Source: Paramoeba atlantica (taxonomy: Eukaryota > Protista > Discosea). From it: a stretch of 64,000 nucleotides of DNA. Below, in pieces: positions 50,249 to 64,000 of the stretch. Each line of letters starts with the position of its first letter. The stretch's first letter is position 1. The position numbers and the translations under genes were made by a program. The notes beneath the pieces were generated by a model. That model had not been told where the DNA came from and did not search any database. It was given only the letters and a program-made list of their open reading frames with translations. The stretch spans positions 1 to 64,000 of the forward strand of contig CDRNVI010000140.1 in assembly GCA_977017575.1 (NCBI GenBank). Direction: 5' to 3'.

Positions 50249-51089
50249 CACCCTTCCAAATGAATATGTTTCACATAAATCAGAAGAAGGAATTTCACAA
50301 CACATCAGAAATCAAGAACAATTAAAGCAAAGCAACAAGACAAGTGGGATTTACATTTAGCACAGCAAATCAAGATGAGGTGAACAGACAGAGACCCATC
50401 ATTGAACCAAATATCAAGCCATCAAGGAAATCAGAATGAATCACAAAATCACAAGAACAAATATCAGTAGAATAGAATGGAAAAACATAAGGGATTGGTG
50501 CAGAAGCAATCAATAATCCAAAACATATTACTTTGAAGCAAAAGAGGGATCAACACAAGAGCGCAAGAGATAATCAAAGAACTTAAGGCATGGACATGGA
50601 GAACAAGACAGAAAAATTCAATTCAGGAATTCAAAAATAATACAACCCAGAAAAGGAGAAATCGATCCAACAAAAACAGCAGGGAATAGGAAGAGAGGGA
50701 TTTGTGTTCACTACTGGAGACACAGGTGGTGCATTGAATCCTCAGAAATGCTATGTTCACTCATCATTGAGCGAGGATTGGAAGGGAGAAAGGATAAGTG
50801 TTCAACAGGAATCACTATTGCATAGTTCCTCTGGGTATGCTACATTTACTCATCATTGAGAGAGGAAGGTGCTGAAGATGTTGAAAAGAAGAATCTTTCA
50901 GAGAAAAGCAAAACAAGTCATCATAAGATGAACCGGTGAGATTGAGAGTAGAAAATCAAAAATGATTTCAACAGAGACAAAGAAATCAAAAGTCCTTAAA
51001 AAAAATAGGGGGTTCAAGATACAATTGTCTGAATTTCCTATCTTTTGTTGTAGTGTGTATTCTTGTGGCTGGTTGCCACAGAAAATATT

Positions 51090-53363
51090 ATGGAAACCTC
51101 TTCACCCAGTGTAAAGGAAGGAGAGGGAATTCCTGCCAGAAACGCCTGGTCAGGACGAGCGGATAGTGAATCATTTGCTCAAGTTGTAAAAAAAAGTGAA
51201 AGAAAGAAAAGACCTCTTGAAACCAAGGAAGGCTTTCCAGCCTCTAAAGGTCTCAGCGATGTGTTACACGAGATTGATCGGAACAATGTCAGACTATACC
51301 AAGGTTTAGTCGTGCGCCTGAACCCAAAAACTGTTGTTGGAGCCAAGTCGAGACCAACAAAGTTAGTGGAATCACTGGATTTTAGACCAGGACTTCCCAA
51401 TTTCAACGAGGTTATCAAAGCGATTGAAAATGTGACTTCTCTTAAAGGGAAGATTTTTGTGAACGTCAAGCAGGGCCATTTTGTGATCTCAGTGCTCGAG
51501 AACATGGATGCTGCCAGTGTAGAAAAAGAGTTTTTGAGCAAAGGTGACGAATTGGCAAAAAAACTCAAGAAATCCTTTGTCTGGAGGAACAATGAGGATG
51601 CAAAATTGTGGGGGCTCAAAATCAGGGTTCCCTTCGAAGCCGAGGGCGTGGAGTGGATCCAGAATCTTTTTGCTGGCCCAAATTCTCTTCCGAGACATAA
51701 TTTGAAGAAAGTAGTTCAAATTGCCCAAAATTGTATTGTTTTGGTTTACAACCAAATCCCCATTAACCTTGTCTGTCTCATCGCCCACACCAAAGGGTGG
51801 TTGGGGATTAGTGATACTCAAGCTTGAGTTTCTGTTTGGACCCCAGCGAGGCCCTTTGATAAAGTGGTGAAATGCCCCACTTGCCAAATTAACCATCCTG
51901 CTTGTTTGGATTGTTTATTTGAAATTTTACAAAAAAAGGATCCAAGTGAAGTTGGCAATATGGCAAGAACAGAAATGTACTCGATCAACACCTGCGACCC
52001 CAAAGGAGTTAAGATAAGAAAACAAGCTGCCAGAGATGGTGTGCAATTTAACTTCGTCTCGCCTGAAGGAGTCCCCTCATCCTGTGCCCCCCTCGGTAAA
52101 ACTGGTGAGCCTATGGTGGTGGGTCCTGAGAGAATAGATCAAACTCCCCCCAAGTCACAAGCTTCTAAACCTGCTGAAGGTCTCTCCCCTATTGGTGTTA
52201 AAAAAGATGGCTCAAATTTACCTGTGCGTAATGCTGGTGGCCAAGGGTTGGTGTCTTGTTCACCTAATGTTATTCCTGCTGAACCTACCCCTCCAAAGGG
52301 CCCCCTTCCTGTGAAGAAGAGCCATGAAGTTGTACCCAATAACTTCAAAGTACCTTCTTCCACAACTAAGGGATCAGCTGTCCAAAGGAGTTCCTCTGTG
52401 GGTCCAGTCAAGCATGATGCTGCAGCTCTGAGTAAGACGAGTTCGTTTTCTCCCATCAAGACCAAAACCCCTTCGAAAATTAAAACAATAAATGGGAGCA
52501 GCAAACAAGGTAGTGGATTCTCAGTGCCCCCCATATTGCCAGCCCAGCGACCACAAGCACAACCAAAAAAGAAGAGTACTCGGACATCGGTGAACACATG
52601 TTCCAACCCAGTAGTCTCTTCCTTTAAGTCTGCTTCTTCACCAAAAGAGACTGTGGGCAAGTCAAGAAATTGTGCTGATTCTGTGATCCAGAAGAAGGAG
52701 AACAGAAGAAGCCAACCTGTTTCCGGCCCTGCTCCCATCTTCATCAACGAAGAAGATTTACCAGTCGAAAATGGATTGGTGGAGGAACCTGACAATAGAA
52801 GGGAGGCGAAATCAATGTTAAAGAAATTGAACCTGAACATCGAATGGGCAAGCACAACCGAGGATTTCAGAAGAGTTTATGAGGGGTTGGAGAATGGCTC
52901 AATTTTCCCAGAGGATAGGAGATTAAGGCATCAAGCTTTCTATTTGGTTGAGTACCTTATGAAGACAGGATGCACCAAGAGGAAGAAGGGCGGATCAGAA
53001 GAGGTGATTAATGTTAGAGTAGGGTGGGAGAAAGGAAAGAATGAGAGTGAAGAGGAAAAGGGAAAAATATTGCAAAAGAAAAGAAAAATTGCACAAGAAA
53101 AGGAAAGTGGGGAAAGAAAGCCGGTGAATTTTCCAAATGAGGAAGGGGTGGGTGTTGTTCATCCACTTATGGAAAAACCTGAGGAAAGAGGCAGTGGTGT
53201 CCAAGACGGTGTCCCCTTTTCCTTTTTGTTTGAAGGGTCAGATATGAAAGTGGAAGGAGAAGAGGAGGAAGAGGGGGATGCTATGGAGATCGAAACGAAT
53301 GAGGAGTTTGCCAGAACAACCCAAGCAAGGAGAGAGAGTGAGGGAGGGAAGTCAGTCGTTTAA
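51090..53363 (+). pseudogene. LINE-B ORF1 (one in-frame TGA at 51825-51827)
   Basis: ORFs 51063-51827 and 51864-53363 are in the same frame, and the 38877 copy has Arg (CGG) at the stop position. Contains a C-x2-C-x3-H-x2-C-x2-C motif (CPTCQINHPACLDC). Confidence 0.8.
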
Positions 53364-53460
53364 AAAAAAAAAAAAACACAAAAACACAAAAACACAAAAA
53401 CACAAAAACACAAAAACACAAAAACACAAAAACAAAAAAAAAAAAAAAAACAAACAAACA

Positions 53461-56400
53461 ATGACTAAACTCAGGAAGAAAAAGAATAAGAAGAGAAAGG
53501 AAAAGGGATTGGTGGATATTAGAAGTAGCTTTGGTGTGGGCCCCCAGGTAGCCCCTCCCCCAACAACAAACTTGCCTAATGTATTCCAGTCAGAGTGCCT
53601 CCCATCAGGTCCTCCGAGTGAGCCAGGAGTTGACCCCCGTGATAGGTCCTCAGCTAATTTAAGTGAGAGTGATGAATGTAGGTTTCCTGATGCATGTGTT
53701 ATCTCCTGGAACATGAATGGGATTCAAAATTTCGAAAAATTGAGAACCCTTCAGAAGATGGCTGGGAGTTGTCGGCCTCTTTTCATTTTGATTCAAGAAT
53801 CTCACTCTGATTTTGAATGTGACCTCGATCTCATCAGGAACCAATTGAGGAAGTATATCTGGTTGAGAGACAACTCCTTTGGGAAGAGGAGGGGTCTGCT
53901 CATTGGAGTTAGGCGGATGGAGGGGGTGAAAGAGATCTCTCCCTGTTTCTTTGACCAGACCATGAGTGGATTATTTGGTGTCCATGTGACTATTGGATCG
54001 ACGAACTATTCTGTCCTGAATATATACCATCACCCTGACCTCAAAGTAGCCACCATCTCACAGGAGGCTGCTCGTTTTTTCGGCCAGAACCCCAGGAGCA
54101 TAAATATCTTTGGGGGTGATTTCAATTGGGATGTGAAGGAAAAACAGATGGGGGAAATTGAAAAGTGTTGTGCTTCTCTTTGTATGTCACGCTTGAAATG
54201 GGATGAACCCACCCATTATAAAGGGAGGTGTATTGACCATATCTTCTTCTCATCCAAGGTTCCATTAAAATGTTTGTTTATCAATGCCATCCTGTCCAGC
54301 TTTAAAGATCATGCACTGCTGATTGGAGGATCCTTGTTTAAGGAATGGGAGATTCGGGTGAATAAGAAATCCATCCCTGAGTATCTGATTAATGACCATG
54401 GGTTCATCAACACTCTTATTGAGAGGATGGGTACCTTCTCCAAGGGTGATGATCCCAATGAGTTTTTGACCAGATTTAAGACCACAGCTTGGGAATTAGT
54501 TCCCTACTGGAGAGAAAGAAACACTGAGGCGGCATTGTTTAGAGAACTGTGGAAGATCCACTCTCTTGTAAGATCCCTTCGCAATTCTTGCATTCTTAGG
54601 AAATCTACTGTCCAGAGGCCATACTCTTCCCTTGAAATGGGTCTGTTGGACCAGGCCTCCCTTGGTTGGAAAGGTCCGAAGGAAGGGAAGTCGTGGAGGA
54701 GAGGAATAATCCCCAGAATGATTTCTGCAGTGCTCAAGAAGATTGAATGCATTGAAGGACAGTTGGGGATCTTTATTGACAGTCACCCTGTGAGGCCTAA
54801 AGTGAGATCATCCCCAAGGGTTAAAGGAATTGTTGTGGATGGGGTCATTTCCAGAGATAATGGTGTGGTCCAGAAAGCAATTAAAGAATTTTGGGGGAAT
54901 CTATTGGGCTCAGTGAGGCCATACAACAAGGACTCCCTCCAGAAGCTGATTGAGAACCATAAACCTCAGTTTCCTAAGGTTGATTACCATGTTGTTGATG
55001 GGGCCAAGGTTGATAAACTGCTGTGACAGTGCAATAATTCAAGCACTGGCCCAGATGGTATCCCCTTTGCTCTCTACAGAGTGACAAGTGAACAGCTGTG
55101 TGATATGTGGTGTGAACTTATTCAGAGAGCTGGGGAATCAATGGATTTCCCTGAGTTGTTTGGGGAGAGTCAGCTTGTGTTACTACCTAAGATTGAGAAT
55201 ATTCCTCGTCCTGACCAATTTCGACCAATAAGTATTACCAATTCTGATTATCGGATTGTGATGAGATATTGGGCCAAATGGCTGATGGAGAGTGCCAGAG
55301 AGGTGATTTCCCCGGAACAAAATGCTATATTTGCTGGAAGGTCCATTGATAATGCAGTGGAATCGATACATGATGGGTTTATGGAAGTGGTAGCAGAGGG
55401 CAAAGATGTGACCATCCTCCAAACTGATTTCTGTAAGGCCTATGACTATGTTAACCATGAAGCCCTTATGGAGTTGCTGATTGGGTTGAATGCTCCACCC
55501 CAAGCCCTTGAAGTTGTATCTAAAGTTCTGCGAGAGTCAGATACATGGCTTCCAACTGTAGGATCGAATGATAAGACACAGAAGGAAGCCATCAAGAGCC
55601 GGACTGGTGTGCGACAAGGCTGCCCCATTTCACCTCTTCTGTTCATTATCCTTTTTGATGTTTTATTGGTTAGTTTGAACAATGGGGGTGACCTTGAGAA
55701 GCTTGCTGGGTTCATGGATGACTTAGCCCTTCTCCTTCACAGGGTTCAGTCCATAAATTCCTTGACCTCAACCTTCCAAGAATATGAACAAGGAACTGGG
55801 ACCAAACTTAACTACAACAAATGCTTTGTATTGTCAACTGAAAAATTCGCTCCTGTGGGCCCTTGGGTTGAAATGCCTTCAGCTAATTATTTGGGAGAGG
55901 AGACTGTGTACTTGGGAGTTACAATTTCTCGAAGAATGAACCCAACTAAAGACTGGGAAGGGGTGATCAAGAAAATGCAGAAGGTTGGAACAGCAATTAA
56001 GCAAAGGAAAGGCAGCTTCAAGGAGAGAGTCCGGATGATCAATACTTACCTTATTTCTTGTATGGGTTATTTGGCAAGATTCAAGCTTATCTCGAAAGCT
56101 GTCTCCTCAAAGATGTGGAAGGCCATTCATTCAGCCTTAGGTGCATATGCAAATCTAAAGTCCTGTGTAATGACCTCCCTTTGTCCCCCCTTCTTTGAAA
56201 AACCTCAAGTTAGACACTCTATTCTGTTTAACTGGGCTCTGCTGATATTGAGGAAACCTCTCCAAGATCATTATAGGAATCCATTGTCCATTGGGGCCAT
56301 GAGGATTGATGCTTTGGAAGCTAGTGGCACTATCTCAGAACAAGTGAGGATGGGCTCCAAAACCAAGAGATCCTTCTCTCTCCTCTCTCGGAACATTTCT

Positions 56401-57811
56401 GTGGGAGTGGAGAATTTCTATGTGGGGAATGGGTGCTTGAAATGTGTGATCTATAATTTGTCTCTTCCACAAAGACCCCAGATTAAGCGGAACCTTTTGA
56501 AATTCTTTTTGAGGGGTCTTCCAACTGTGGATAAGATTGCCCATTTTATATCTGTGAGTCCACTTTGTTGGCTGTGTAGGAAAGCCAAAGAGTCAAGGGT
56601 GCACCTCCTTGAAGAATGTCTGAAAGCTAAGGCAATTTTGAAAACTATTGGGAGGAGATGCTTTGTTTTAAAGATTCCTGGGTGGGAGAGTGCCGACTTT
56701 GTGTGTGGATTTATGAACCAGTATCTAAAGAAGGCTGAAGCATCTGCAGTGAGTGCAGCCCTATTGAGCTTGTGGATCACTGTATGTGCAGAAGGATCGA
56801 AGTCCCCAAGCTTTGCTGTTAAAATTTTTGATGAAATTGCTAAGACAAACAAGATGATCCCCAAACAAACTATAAGAAAGGCTCCCCAAAGGTAAAAGAG
56901 AAGTGAAACAACCAAAGTTCAAGTACCCTGCCTTGCAAGTGTTTTATGATGGCTTTGGGTGTGTAGACCCCCACATTGGGGGAGCTGGGTATGTGATTAT
57001 TAAGGAAGGTTTGGAGGTTGGAGGTGGATTTGAATCAATCCCACTAGGCTCAAATAACTTGGGTGAGTTTTTGGGATGCTTAGCTGGTCTACAACAAGTT
57101 ATTGGCTTTGGGCAACGCATAGAGATGGTGGGAGATTGTAAAATTCTGACTGAGGCAGCGCCTAAGACGAAACCAATTGATAACTTTGAGCTCAACGAGA
57201 TCCTATCTGAGATCAGAAATATTGCTGAGAGTAAATTTGCCAAAGTGGAGTACACTCATGTGTATTGCAAATTCAACAAGAGGTCAGATGCAATTGCAAC
57301 GGCAGCAAGTCACTCTGAAGAGGATGGGATGGAAGCTGTGTTTGATAGGAACTGGGATCCAAGATCGAAACAACTAGCAACAACCAGTGAGGAATGGATT
57401 ATCGAAAATTCCAAGCTGTGGAAGTGGGTGATGGAACCGTTGGATTTGGATTGGAGCTTCCCTGTGAAGAAAGTTCAGTTTAAGAGGAGGTTTAAGGACA
57501 AGGTGATTACAACTAATAATGTTTACTTCCCAGTACAAGCTGCACTGGATGGGGTGATGATTTCTCCTGTGTTCATTTCAGATGATATTGTCAAGTGGTT
57601 TCCAGAAAGAGCTGCACCTGGAGAGATGTTAGAAAGTTTTGTTGAAAAAGAAAACCAGAAATGGAGAGAGGAGTATGAGCAAGCAAGGAACCGTTGGTTG
57701 AAGAGTGCAATGAGATCTTCCATTGTAAGGAAGATTATTAGGCCTATTAAGGCTGTTAAGAAGAAAAGAATTTTGAAAGAGATTCGAATGAGAAATAGAA
57801 AGAAACATTAG
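53461..57811 (+). pseudogene. LINE-B ORF2 (APE-RT-zinc finger-RNase H), one TGA and one +1 frameshift
   Basis: ISWNMNG, IQESH, GGDFN; RPISITNSDY, DFCKAYD, RQGCPISPLLF, FMDD; FYDG...NNLGEF...GDC...NKRSDAIA. TGA at 55024-55026; an extra C in the run at 56884-56887. Confidence 0.9.
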
Positions 57812-60800
57812 AGCTTTTGGCCACTAAGTTGGCACTGAAGTGGGTTGATCCTACTTGATTATAACAATTTAATTTAAGTGTATTCTTGGGTGTCCAGATT
57901 ACACTTCATTTCAATAAATGGCATCTCTGATGTCTAAAATTAAAAAAAAAAAAGAAATCAAAAGTCCAGCAGAAATTATCAAGGTGTCACAAGCTTCAGA
58001 GATGATTGGGAACGGGTGAGAAGAACATTGGACAGAGAGCAACAGGAATGGAGTGCAGCAGCAACAAAAAAGACAAAAAAGATCATCCAGAATAGTGCTG
58101 AAAACATGGTTCAGAGGCAAAGCATTCCAGGTATGCATTTCCAAAATTCAGGAGATGAATTTTCAAAGATAAATCACACATCACATATGTAAAAACAAAT
58201 ATGTTGTCACACAAAGGATAAATGTTGATTAAATCAACAAATGTTACAATTGCATTGAGATTTGAGAAGAGAGGTGAGAAGAACACAAGCTGAAAGAAGA
58301 ACATCAAAGAAAAAATGTCATGAGGCCAGTGAAAATCCATTGCAAGGGTGAGAAAAATAAAGACTCAGAGAATCAGAGAAAATAAAACTCAGAACTCCCT
58401 TGAAAGAACAAAGACGAGGCAATGGAGTCACAAAAGAACAAAGAGGGGACATGAGAACTCCCTTTGAAGGTAACAGGTGTCTTAAAAGCAAAGTAACATC
58501 AGAGGGCATTGTCTAAGGGATTGCAAAGACAAAAGCGGTCATCAAATTGCAGGCAGAACAGAAAGAAATGGGATAGCAATCTCCAAAAATGATGATAACA
58601 TCGAAACAGAGGAAGAAGGAACAACATTCACAATCAACCATAAAACAAGAGAGAATTGGAGAGTGAGAACCAGATCAAAAGATTAAATTGCACAACAATA
58701 ATTTGACGAGAATAAACTATAGGGAATAACAAAGGAAATTGAATAATACCAAAATGTTTTTAGGTGAAGCCAAGAAATTAGTCACGAGTCACACGAACAC
58801 TTCCTTCCAATTTGATATTTTGATCTCATCACAATAAGGGCATTTCAAAACAAGAGAGAGTATTAACCATCAGATTGCAAAACTGAATTGACAGAGAAAA
58901 TCCAAAATCAACTTATCAAAGATCAAGAAAAGACTTAATTCCAATAAATCAACCAATAATTAGAATAGAGTGTAAATGGTGCAAGATGCTCAATGGAACT
59001 TGCTGAAAATAAAACCATTACAAATCAAATTCAAGAATCGACATCATTACCAGAGAATAAACAAAAACATGAGACTATGACAGAGGGAAAAGCGAATCGA
59101 GGTTTCTCAAAGAGAAAAGAAATTTAGAACAGAGAGTATCAATGACAAGAGAGAAGCATCAGCAATCAAGTCAACTTCAAAACAAACAAATCAAATTAGA
59201 AAGGTCATAACTTGGGGGAAAGTGCAATAACCAAAATCAAAACAGCTTCAGGGGTGGTACATCCAAAATTACACAAACACAATTTTTTTAATGGAACACC
59301 CTTCCAACACCAAAATGGGTTTCAAAATTCAAGTAGGAGTATCTGAGAGAGGAATCCAAGTGAAAATAAAGTCCAGAATCGAAATCACAAAAGGTAAGAG
59401 AAAGGTATAAATCTGACAATTTCAAAGCAAAGAAGGAAATCAGAAGAATTTCCATCATCAACCAAAAACAAAAGAACAAAAAGAATCATCCCAAGGCATC
59501 AATCCAAGAATGACAAATTCAGAATGACATTGTCACAAGAAAAACAAGGAGATGGAATCAATTATTTCTTCAATAAAATCAACACAAGGATGAATTCAAT
59601 CAGAAATAAGAGTTCAAATTCATGGGCAGGGAATTTGAGATAATAAGGCGAAAAATCTAAAGCGGTTAACAATAGAGTACATTCAGATTCAAGAAGTATA
59701 AATTCAATCCAGAATTACTTTGAAGATATCAGGAATTTTTAAGAACATCATTGAGACAGAGGGAAAAATCCAATCAAGCTTCGAGGAAACAAAACAAAAC
59801 GAGAAATTGTCAAGCATAAGAATAAATCCAGTCAGGCAAATCCACAATCACAAATTCACAATCAGAAATGGCAGTTGAAGAACAAAAAAAATCCAAAAAT
59901 ACAAATCCACAAATCCAAAATGAGATAGAAATGAGTATTAAAACTACACAACCATCATTCAATCAATACAAATGATAACAAACGTTCATTGAATCAAGAA
60001 AGAAAGCTTGATCAGGGCTCAACTCAAAATCAACAATAAAATAATCATCAAAATGCAGTTTGTAAGCATGAGGCAAACATCAACAAAGACCAATCGAAAT
60101 AATAGAAGGAATCACGAAAATTTTCGAATAGAACCAACAATCACAATATCCAACACAAAGAAGAGATTGAGAAACATGAAGAGGCATTGAGAAATGTTGA
60201 CAAACAAAACTCAAGTCAAGATTATACAAGGAAACAGTGCTGTGTAAGCTGAAGTTGTCCAGAATGTTAATTCCAAATGATATGCTGTTCCGAAAGTATA
60301 ACCAAAGACAAGTAACCAAAACAAACAATGAGCAAGAGGACTGAATTGATTTTACCAACAAAAATGAAGCATGGAAATCAACAAGAAATCATCTCGAGCG
60401 AATCAAAGGCAGAGAGAATCCATAAAACAGAAATAGAACCAAAAAACAGTTGGGCAAAACAAAGAACAAAGTCAAAACAGAGTGTCATGACAGGCAAAGA
60501 AAAACATCAACAAATACAAAAATAATCTCCAAGAAATGAAAAAAATAACATGAATCTTCTATGACATAAGGAGAAAAAACAAAAACAAGTGTGATCAGAA
60601 CTGTGCTTATCGAAAAACCATATGCTAGGTCAAAGACGGCTGCCAGAAATATAATTCAAAACAGTGTACACTGGTATAAAATCGTAAGCTGAAAGCTAAA
60701 AAGCTGGTGCCTTGTTAGGGCTGATAGAAAGGGGGAGAATAAGTGATAATAGGATCGCTGAGGATAGAAGAGAAGGTGTGTCCACATAAATCAAAAGGAG

Positions 60801-61739
60801 AGGGATAAAAGAGAATGACCAGCTCCGTATCACAAAAACAAACAAAAAAATGTCAATCATCCATGCCAAAAGTGCCAAAAAATCGATAACCAGGATCATC
60901 TACAAGAAAGATCCAAAAACCAAAACGGGAAGCTTAATTGCAGCCATAAAACCAAAAATGACAAACAAAATTGTTGTCCAAAACATAAAATCCAAACAGG
61001 AAAAACATTCCACAAAAGAAGGATCAAAAATACTGTAGACATGTCACAAACACAATAAACAGATGAGACATGCACTTCATAAAACAAGGAATTATCGAAA
61101 ACATCTCAAGACAGGAGCAAAACCAACAAATAAATGTACCAAGAGATTCAGCAAGATGAACAAACAACAGAATGATCATTGAGAGCAATGAACAAAATGT
61201 AAAGGGCAAAGTGAGACAATGAGGGATAAAGTCTCAATCCAAAAGTACAAAAACAAGAGACCAAAAATGAAACAAACAGGTTTAAGGTGCAGAAGTATGG
61301 GAACAAGGATCAGAGGCATAAAGAAATTTTCCGAGAAGAATTTCTTCACTCAAAACAAGACCAAAAGAACTTGATTTCCTTGGTTTGAAACAAAGAACAA
61401 GAATCAAAAAATGGTTTTCAATTTTGATGCTCAGTTCACAGAACAACAAACAGACTTTCTCAAAGAGGAAGAAGACAAGAAAACAAAAAACAAACAAACG
61501 AGAAAACAATCAAGATTCACAAACACCAGAATCACAATTGCGAGAATTGGCCAAAAACTGCAACTATGACCCAAGAAAACAAAACGTGAAAAACAAGTTT
61601 TCAACATGAAGAAAAAACACATGAAAAGAAATATGAAAAAGAACGGAGAGGACAGTGATTCAAAATCGCTGCTTCCAGAAAACAAAGATGAAAGAGGAGG
61701 AAGAATAAACTTTCAAAAAACAAAACTCAGGCCAGAAGC

Positions 61740-61753
61740 CTAGACTCTTAATC
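61740..61753 (-). other. Primer-binding site of element B, complementary to the tRNA-Lys(CUU) anticodon arm
   Basis: The + strand reads CTAGA-CT-CTT-AA-TC and abuts the LTR. An identical PBS occurs at 63592-63605 in the second copy. Confidence 0.75.
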
Positions 61754-62324
61754 TGTGAAGTGGCCAGGAGTTTGGGGAAGGAAAGAGTGGGCAGGTGAAG
61801 GAAAGAAGGAAAGGGAAGAAAGGGAAAAAAAAGAAAGAGAAAAGTCAAGAGCAAATCATGGAAAAGATTGGCAGCACATCACAAAGGGAAACCAACCAAG
61901 TAAGTTTATTCCTTTTACCAACAAACAAAAGAAGTATTTGTATGGGACAACAAATATAACAAGTGTGGAATTGACAAGAAGCAAAACAGAATGAAAGACA
62001 AAAACACACAAGAAAAAGGATGTGGCGGAGAGATTAAATCATAGATAAATGTTACAGAACACAGGATTAATTGACATAAAGATTATATAAAATAAACAAA
62101 TAAGATGGTGCAAAAATATTAAGGGAACAACTTGAATTCAGAGTGAGAACTGGGTGGGAAGAGCTCAGATGAGAGAGACAGGAATACATGCAGAATCAGA
62201 ACAGTTTGTACAATCTTACAAATGTTCATCAGAGATATTCACACAACAGGGGAGCACAGTGGTGTACAAAGAGAAACAGATTAATTTGCACAACATGGAA
62301 TCAGTTCACACCAGGATTCTGACA
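61754..62324 (-). repeat. 5' LTR of element B
   Basis: The minus strand starts TGTCAGAATCC, ends CTTCACA, and is followed by the PBS. Confidence 0.92.
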
Positions 62325-62500
62325 ATTTCTTGTTGACTCTGGTTGCTTGAACACTATTGTGACTTCTGAAGATAGAATAATGAATACTTGAAAACCTGAC
62401 CCAATTGTTGCCATTTCACAAGCAAATGGTGAATTAATCCCTGTCTCTCTTGTGGGTGATTTAGAATTGGAGAAAAGTCTTCCCCCTATTGAGAATGTTT
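62325..62500 (+). pseudogene. Copia aspartic protease remnant of element A (continuation of 49677)
   Basis: Removing element B restores ...ETDDE-FLVDSGCLNTIVT...ISQANGELIPVSLVGDLEL...IENV (DSG motif). Confidence 0.85.
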
Positions 62501-63020
62501 CTTTATCTTTTCAATCCCATTTTCAGAGACAAACCACAGGAAACACACAAAAAGAAAAAATGGGCAAAAAGCTTATCTCAAATATGGGTAATAGACCCTA
62601 TTATTTAGACACCTAAATTTTGGTTATTTTTCATTTGCCCATTGGAGCTACAGCCTGTTGAGATGGTGAAAGCAATCCAATTCCTTATAGAGCAAAATGA
62701 GAAATTGATGAGGCAGAATGAACATACTACAGTGAAAGAGATGGTTGGGAAGACTTTGTACAAGTCTCATGAGAGTCATCTCAAACTGGCTCTCAAGAAT
62801 ATCAATTTCAAAGATCCATTGCAAGTTACTTGTTTCTGTGTTCAGGGTGAATGCAACTTGGAACAAGATGTTTGGCCCAACACACTTGAATTTGGAAGTC
62901 AAATCAAACTTGCAATAACTCTCCCCACTGGTAGTTGGAATCTCTTAGGACTAAAGAAGGATGCTGGATTGCCAAGAGATATATTACTCACTCTGAATAG
63001 CTCTTTTGGGAGGCAGAATG

Positions 63021-64000
63021 TGTCAGAATCCTGGTGTGAACTGATTCCATGTTGTACAAATTAATTTGTTTCTCTTTATACACCACTGTGCTCCCCTGTT
63101 GTGTGAATATCCCTGATGAACATTTGTAAGACTATACAGACCATTCTGATTCTACATGTATTCCTGTCTCTCTCATCTGAGCTCTTCCCACCCAGTTCTC
63201 ACTTTGAATTCAAGTTGTTCCCTTAATATTTTCGCACCATCTTATTTGTTTATTTTATATAATCTTTATGTCAATTAATCCTGTGTTCTATAACATTTAT
63301 CTGTGATTTAATCTCTCCACCACATCCTTTTTCTTGTGTGTTTTTGTCTTTCATTCTGTTTTGCTTCTTGTCAATTCCACACTTGTTATATTTGTTGTCC
63401 CATATGAATACTCTTTTTGTTTGTTGGTAAAAGGAATAAACTTACTTGATTGGTTTCCCCTTGCGATGCACCACCAATCTTTTCCATGATTTGCTCTTGA
63501 CTTTTCTCTTTCTTTCTTTTCCCTTTCTTTCCTTTCCTTCTTTCCTTCACCTGCCCACTCTTTCCTTCTCCAAACTCCTGGCCACTTCACAGATTAAGAG
63601 TCTAGGCTTCCGGCCTGAGTTTTGTTTTTTGAAAGTTTATCCTTCCTCCTCTTTCATCTTTGTTTTCTGGAAGCAGCGATTTCGAATCACTGTCCTCTCT
63701 GTTCTTTTTCATGTTTCTTTTCATGTGTTTTTTCTTTGTGTTGAAAACTCATTTTTCGTGTTTTGTTTTTTTGGGTCATGGTTATGGTTTTTGGCCAATT
63801 CTCGCGATTGTGATTCTGGCATTTGTGAATCTTGATTGTTTTCTCATTTGTTTGTTTTTGTTTTCTTGTTTTCTTCTTCATTGAGAAAGTCTATTTGTTG
63901 TTCTGTGAACTGAGCATCAAAATTGGAAACCATTTTTCAATTCCTGTTCTTTGTTTCAAACCAAGGAGATCAAGTTCTTTTGGTTTTGTTTTGAGTGAAG
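63021..64000 (+). mobile_element. Second copy of element B (B'): 5' LTR 63021-63591, PBS and leader, running off the window end
   Basis: Reverse-complement match to 61346-62324; 571-bp LTR TG...CA followed by GATTAAGAGTCTAG. Confidence 0.9.

Follow-up and report, generated by a model that had tools for sequence, protein, structure and literature searches.

Drosophila copia and 1731, yeast Ty5 and Volvox Osser, all hemivirus-type Copia elements, are primed by half tRNA-iMet. Candida Tca2 uses a tRNA-Arg fragment as its primer. In the hemivirus register the primer ends at the "3'-OH of nucleotide 40" (PMC1181622). Plant half-tRNA primers are iMet and Ile, with Bianca relying on half tRNA-Ile (PMC6317226), and in Puccinia (rust fungi) the Copia and Helenus elements use half-tRNA primers of the Tyr, Ile, Asp and iMet types (PMC10886601). 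The Lys type occupies one sentence of the literature: Donnart et al. (2017, BMC Genomics 18:410) gave the primer binding site (PBS) core of FunCo1 as ATTAAGAGTCT, the complement of an internal region of the tRNA-Lys gene, and FunCo1 was detected almost only in Pezizomycotina fungi (PMC5445492). A literature search for the PBS motif found no retrotransposon paper besides that one. The primer identity, which the initial annotation of this locus had suspected to be undescribed, was therefore already in print for the fungal FunCo1 clade, in passing and without a check against the tRNA of the host.

The window analysed here, a stretch of 64,000 nucleotides, holds three elements, A, B and B', that use the same kind of site. 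They resemble FunCo1 in carrying the PBS core ATTAAGAGTCT and in belonging to the Copia superfamily, and differ in that the present host, whose transcriptome is part of a collection of marine microbial eukaryotes, is non-fungal-looking. In contrast to the FunCo1 paper, the host's own tRNA gene could be matched over 14 nt, and the register and a possible extension of the site were worked out, so that this primer type gains both a host that does not look fungal and a host-verified tRNA match. With the hemiviruses the elements share a PBS directly after the LTR, complementarity to the anticodon arm with the primer 3' end at nt 39-40, the Copia gag-PR-INT-RT layout and 5-bp duplications, whereas the tRNA is tRNA-Lys(CUU) rather than half tRNA-iMet. 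Plant Bianca, Puccinia Copia and Helenus, and Candida Tca2 also depend on half-tRNA primers, but none of these is Lys. Half-tRNA primers thus keep one register, 27-40, but their identity shifts among Copia lineages, with iMet, Ile, Tyr, Asp, Arg and Lys all represented.

Judged by their sequence, A, B and B' belong to the half-tRNA-primed, hemivirus-like group of Ty1/copia-type LTR retrotransposons. A has a copia-type gag, its sister copies have RVT_2 domains, and B and B' have TG...CA ends with a 5-bp target duplication; in all three the PBS adjoins the 5' LTR and is complementary to an internal tRNA stretch ending at nt 40, without a complement of CCA.

Structure of the nested elements

The features of the nest, in window coordinates, are as follows.

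48087 to 48470, forward strand: 5' LTR of element A; end firm, start approximate and probably truncated by about 20 nt
48471 to 48484, forward strand: PBS of element A, GATTAAAAGTCTAG, complementary to tRNA-Lys(CUU) positions 27-40 at 13 of 14 bases
48485 to 48504, forward strand: leader boxes of element A, GCT... and CTGAGC, complements of tRNA D-arm positions 23-25 and 10-15 with G26 skipped; a possible extension of the PBS
48576 to 49677, forward strand: gag of element A, with a copia-type gag domain (PF14223) and a CCHC knuckle (PF00098)
49678 to 50248, reverse strand: 3' LTR of element B, 571 bp
50249 to 50257: polypurine tract of element B, GGAAGGGTG
50249 to 61739, reverse strand: internal region of element B, with no long ORF and no reverse transcriptase (RT)
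about 51063 to 57811, forward strand: LINE nested inside B, with endonuclease, RT and RNase H domains
61740 to 61753, reverse strand: PBS of element B, GATTAAGAGTCTAG, complementary to tRNA-Lys(CUU) positions 27-40 at 14 of 14 bases
61754 to 62324, reverse strand: 5' LTR of element B, 571 bp
62325 to 63020, forward strand: stretch of element A lying between the insertions of B and B', contiguous with the A gag region in copy L086
63021 to 68687: element B' as a whole, with an exact 5-bp target duplication, GAATG
63021 to 63591, forward strand: 5' LTR of element B'
63592 to 63605, forward strand: PBS of element B', GATTAAGAGTCTAG, complementary to tRNA-Lys(CUU) positions 27-40 at 14 of 14 bases
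68117 to 68687: 3' LTR of element B', beyond the window, in L063

Element A was the insertion host of both B and B'. Its gag region is unbroken in copy L086; in the window it is decayed by stops and interrupted by the B insertion. The 5' LTR of A is 96-97% identical to those of two further A copies, L086 and L080, both of which have some 20 extra upstream bases, from TGTTACG, that the window copy is without. The LTRs of B start with TGTCAG and end with TTCACA, and its 5-bp target duplication, ATTTC, is exact at 49673-49677 and 62325-62329. The LTR ends of B and B' are firm because their TG...CA ends carry such exact duplications.

Each of the three 14-mers starts at the first base past an LTR of the TG...CA type that ends in ...ACA, and the TGG sought after the 5' LTRs of A, B and B' was absent in all three. 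With one mismatch permitted, shuffles of the window predict 0.06 PBS matches, against three seen. The initial annotation had described PBSs set directly after three 5' LTRs and lacking TGG, and every one of its coordinates and strands was reproduced. It had allowed that the LTR boundary might lie elsewhere, which the 5-bp duplications of B and B' and an LTR pair in a further family, E, show not to be so.

The B-family elements (49678-62324; 63021-68687 = L063:1-4687) are about 5.7 kb long with 571-bp LTRs that are 95-97% alike, and the family has at least four copies in the genome. The features that it shares with the autonomous families appear limited to the PBS and the GCTT box. Elsewhere in the window, 39913-40635 is a tandem array of about 17 units with a period of about 41 nt.

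Conservation and expression of the primer binding site

Searched together with the preceding CA, the PBS has 22 exact occurrences in the genome and its reversed control has none. The sites comprise 19 with the G form of GATTAAGAGTCTAG and three with the A form of GATTAAAAGTCTAG. This survey, which had been proposed with the initial annotation, shows a site common to at least five LTR families, in which the G form prevails. Across 13 copies from five families (A to E) the flanks average 57% identity, while ACA plus PBS is invariant except at the wobble site. That the 14-mer is a chance match, or that the LTR boundary has been misplaced, is extremely improbable: we found no point in favour of either, and they are opposed by the 5-bp duplications flanking the TG...CA ends, by the empty reversed control and by the conservation of the 14-mer in five families.

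The site is also present in RNA. A public transcript contig, L087, is 100% identical over 1176 nt to an A-family copy on contig C219 and contains 31 nt of U5, the G-form PBS, the leader and gag. When L087 is compared with L086:1472-2647, the transcript ends in a non-templated A run after ...GTTT, where the genome reads GTTTACTC; an AATAAA lies about 25 nt upstream of the A run, and the equivalent point in the window is at about 49612. Going by this one assembled contig, early polyadenylation would yield a gag-only mRNA with a TAA stop completed by the tail, whereas the genomic frame continues into the protease. Such an mRNA may be a way to make excess Gag.

Match to the host tRNA-Lys(CUU)

The host tRNA set was surveyed via pattern searches of the genome, and tRNA-Lys(CTT) genes were confirmed with ARAGORN. 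All 28 genomic occurrences of CTAGACTCTTAATCTAG were called as tRNA-Lys(CTT) genes by ARAGORN. In the numbered gene, CTAGACTCTTAATC occupies positions 27-40; the PBS of B and B' is therefore its complement at 14 of 14 bases, with the first base opposite C40. The element bases directly past the PBS leave tRNA positions 26 and 25 unpaired. The initial annotation, working from the shape of the 14-mer, had assigned its complement to tRNA positions 27-40 and had likened the register to that of copia and Ty5. The 28 host genes bear out the first of these proposals, and the primer end at nt 40 the second.

A tRNA-Asn primer was considered and rejected, since AGACTGTTAATC was found only on C53, a contig of a different contig set. 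The nuclear tRNA-Lys genes fall into two disjoint sets, one with the stem CCAGA on the low-numbered contigs C26, C53 and C59 and the other with CTAGA or CTAGG from C137 upwards. It is this second contig set that holds every copia RT match and every Lys-type PBS site, and the assembly seems to hold two eukaryotes. Separately, 14 short contigs (L043-L056; contigs C108-C134) share one organellar tRNA cluster: Met, Trp-like UCA, Gln, Cys, Ile, Lys, His, Leu, Pro, Asp, Glu, Leu and Met. They are probably many redundant mitochondrial contigs.

The wobble difference between A and B

The PBS of A in the window has TTT at the anticodon-complement position, and the initial annotation had proposed that two Lys isoacceptors are in use, a tRNA-Lys(UUU) half by family A and a tRNA-Lys(CUU) half by family B. 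With one G-U pair allowed, tRNA-Lys(UUU) could form 13 of 14 pairs with this site. We nonetheless regard such a division as very unlikely. The comparison of host Lys anticodon arms with the 14-mers, suggested in the same annotation, came out exact for Lys-CTT and not for Lys-TTT: the host's nuclear tRNA-Lys(UUU) reads CTAGG-CTTTTAA-CCTAG, with two differences from the complement of A's PBS, and on that PBS its position 39, adjacent to the priming 3' end, would be in an A-C mismatch. A full-stem TTT version had no match in the genome, pattern scans of this organism's contigs returned no tRNA gene with the A-form complement AGACTTTTAATC, and none of the four genomic matches of the 14-mer CTAGACTTTTAATC is a tRNA. 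A Lys(TTT) gene with the stem CCAGA/TCTGG is found only on C26 and C59, in the separate contig set without a copia RT match.

Nor is the A form a trait of any family. The A-family copies L080 and L086 and the family transcript have the G form, and the A form is limited to one copy per family in A (the window), C (L068) and D (L074), with G in their remaining copies. Relative to L080 and L086, the window A copy has 46 private substitutions, 42 of them G>A or C>T and mostly at CpG; three of its private substitutions fall in the AGA context, which is also that of the PBS site. In L068, 43 of 58 changes are likewise G>A or C>T, and other PBS copies show other changes, mostly transitions (AATTAAG..., ...AGTTTAG). 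Given the minority status of the A form and the bias towards G>A and C>T, the wobble difference reflects decay and therefore no choice of primer. On this comparison of copies, the A opposite C34 in the window A copy is a post-insertion G>A transition, with no switch to tRNA-Lys(UUU). A tempting over-reading, wobble-specific choice of isoacceptor, is thereby replaced by ordinary C>T/G>A decay.

Over 48100-49677, about 90% of the private substitutions of the copia copy against L080 and L086 are C>T or G>A and concentrated at CpG, a pattern that points to methylation-driven decay of repeats.

Proposed priming mechanism

Taken as a whole, the best explanation of the site is probably priming by half of a tRNA-Lys(CUU), a reading drawn from sequence comparison. 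A tRNA-Lys(CUU) 5' half, produced by a cut within the 3' strand of the anticodon stem so that its 3'-OH is at C40, would anneal to the PBS and prime minus-strand strong-stop DNA. A tie between transposition and tRNA cleavage remains an idea. The pairing would probably extend past a bulged G26 into the D arm, through the GCT and CTGAG boxes of the leader. The PBS itself would go no further than position 27, and the probable reason is an RT block in plus-strand synthesis at G26, a base expected to be m2,2G; with RT halted there, the second strand transfer would have 14 nt of overlap. The pairs G10-C25 and C11-G24, together with a 5-nt variable loop, favour m2,2G26, a modification that stops RT. 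Its presence as a stop would explain the 14-nt length of the PBS.

The link of the 14-mer to priming is made through its sequence, and fungal GalEa copia elements have been reported without a tRNA-type PBS (PMC5445492). The 14-mer might serve in another role, as a packaging or dimerisation signal or as a target of tRNA-derived small RNA, and the element might be primed in some other way, such as self-priming of the Tf1 type or use of a tRNA 3' end. We consider this very unlikely. Self-priming was rejected on finding that the longest PBS-complement word in the LTRs of A, C, D and E is at most 7 nt, priming by a tRNA 3' end is opposed by the missing TGG, and the 14-mer sits exactly at the place required of a PBS, in the register of proven half-tRNA primers.

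A GCT follows the PBS in all five families, after one extra base in family E, and a second leader box reads CTGAG in A, B and D, CTGAT in C and CTGGG in E. In RNAduplex predictions these boxes pair with tRNA positions 23-25 and 10-15, and G26 is unpaired. The D-arm duplex formed by the 20 nt after the PBS was stronger than shuffles in five of five families (fraction 0.006-0.035), with z from -1.9 to -3.1 per family, values that are not independent as the families are related; when 100 other 20-nt windows were taken from the element itself, it outdid 99-100 of them in each family. The extension is suggestive only, because of this relatedness, and we propose tentatively, as a possibility somewhat short of even, that the primer site exceeds 14 nt and that the leader in all five families pairs with the D arm while skipping exactly G26. 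If so, the modified G26 would set the length of the PBS by stopping RT and would be tolerated as a bulge when the primer anneals. The same G26 rule would then apply to every half-tRNA-primed copia element and account for the 27-40 register that they have in common.

Coding capacity and relatives

Element A is a decayed autonomous copy. The gag frame of its intact homologue L086 continues through to a DSG protease, and an open frame of 1682 aa is present in the A-family copy on C219. A genome search with PF07727 (copia RT) gave 34 RVT_2 matches, all on contigs C137-C230, and for about 20 of the 34 the same strand carries the PBS, or a close variant of it, at a distance of 3.3-5.3 kb upstream. 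The internal sequences of B and B', about 4.5 kb each, lack both an RT and any ORF longer than about 100 aa, and the two therefore look like non-autonomous relatives inserted into A. A further copia family (C137:77223, C152:34524 and C201:91737) carries GATTAAGAGTCT and then CT; this site matches positions 29-40 over 12 nt, and RVT_2 lies 3.4-3.8 kb downstream of it.

Two ENA assemblies contain the same families (L088, family E; L089, family D) or the same 14-mer (L090), and their source is probably the same or a close organism. The LTR pair of L088 ends in ...CACACA, with the PBS after the 5' LTR and unrelated bases after the 3' LTR. At L090:148-161 (reverse strand) the 14-mer lies apparently three bases (TGA) from an apparent LTR end (...TGTTCA), and L090 may represent a family with a spacer between U5 and PBS. 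Apart from this organism's transcript, a gag query retrieved just two contigs, both from another assembly of the same or a near organism, and a search of metagenome contigs with the family E RT found no relatives. The nearest RTs outside these assemblies share 41-45% identity and lie on short contigs without the 5' region. Among relatives from other samples, with 30-36% RT identity, a half tRNA-iMet site directly follows the LTR in three of the four with a readable 5' region; these three (L092, L095 and L098) carry GGTTATGAGCC or GGTTATGGGCC, that is GGTTATG(A/G)GCC, past the LTR.
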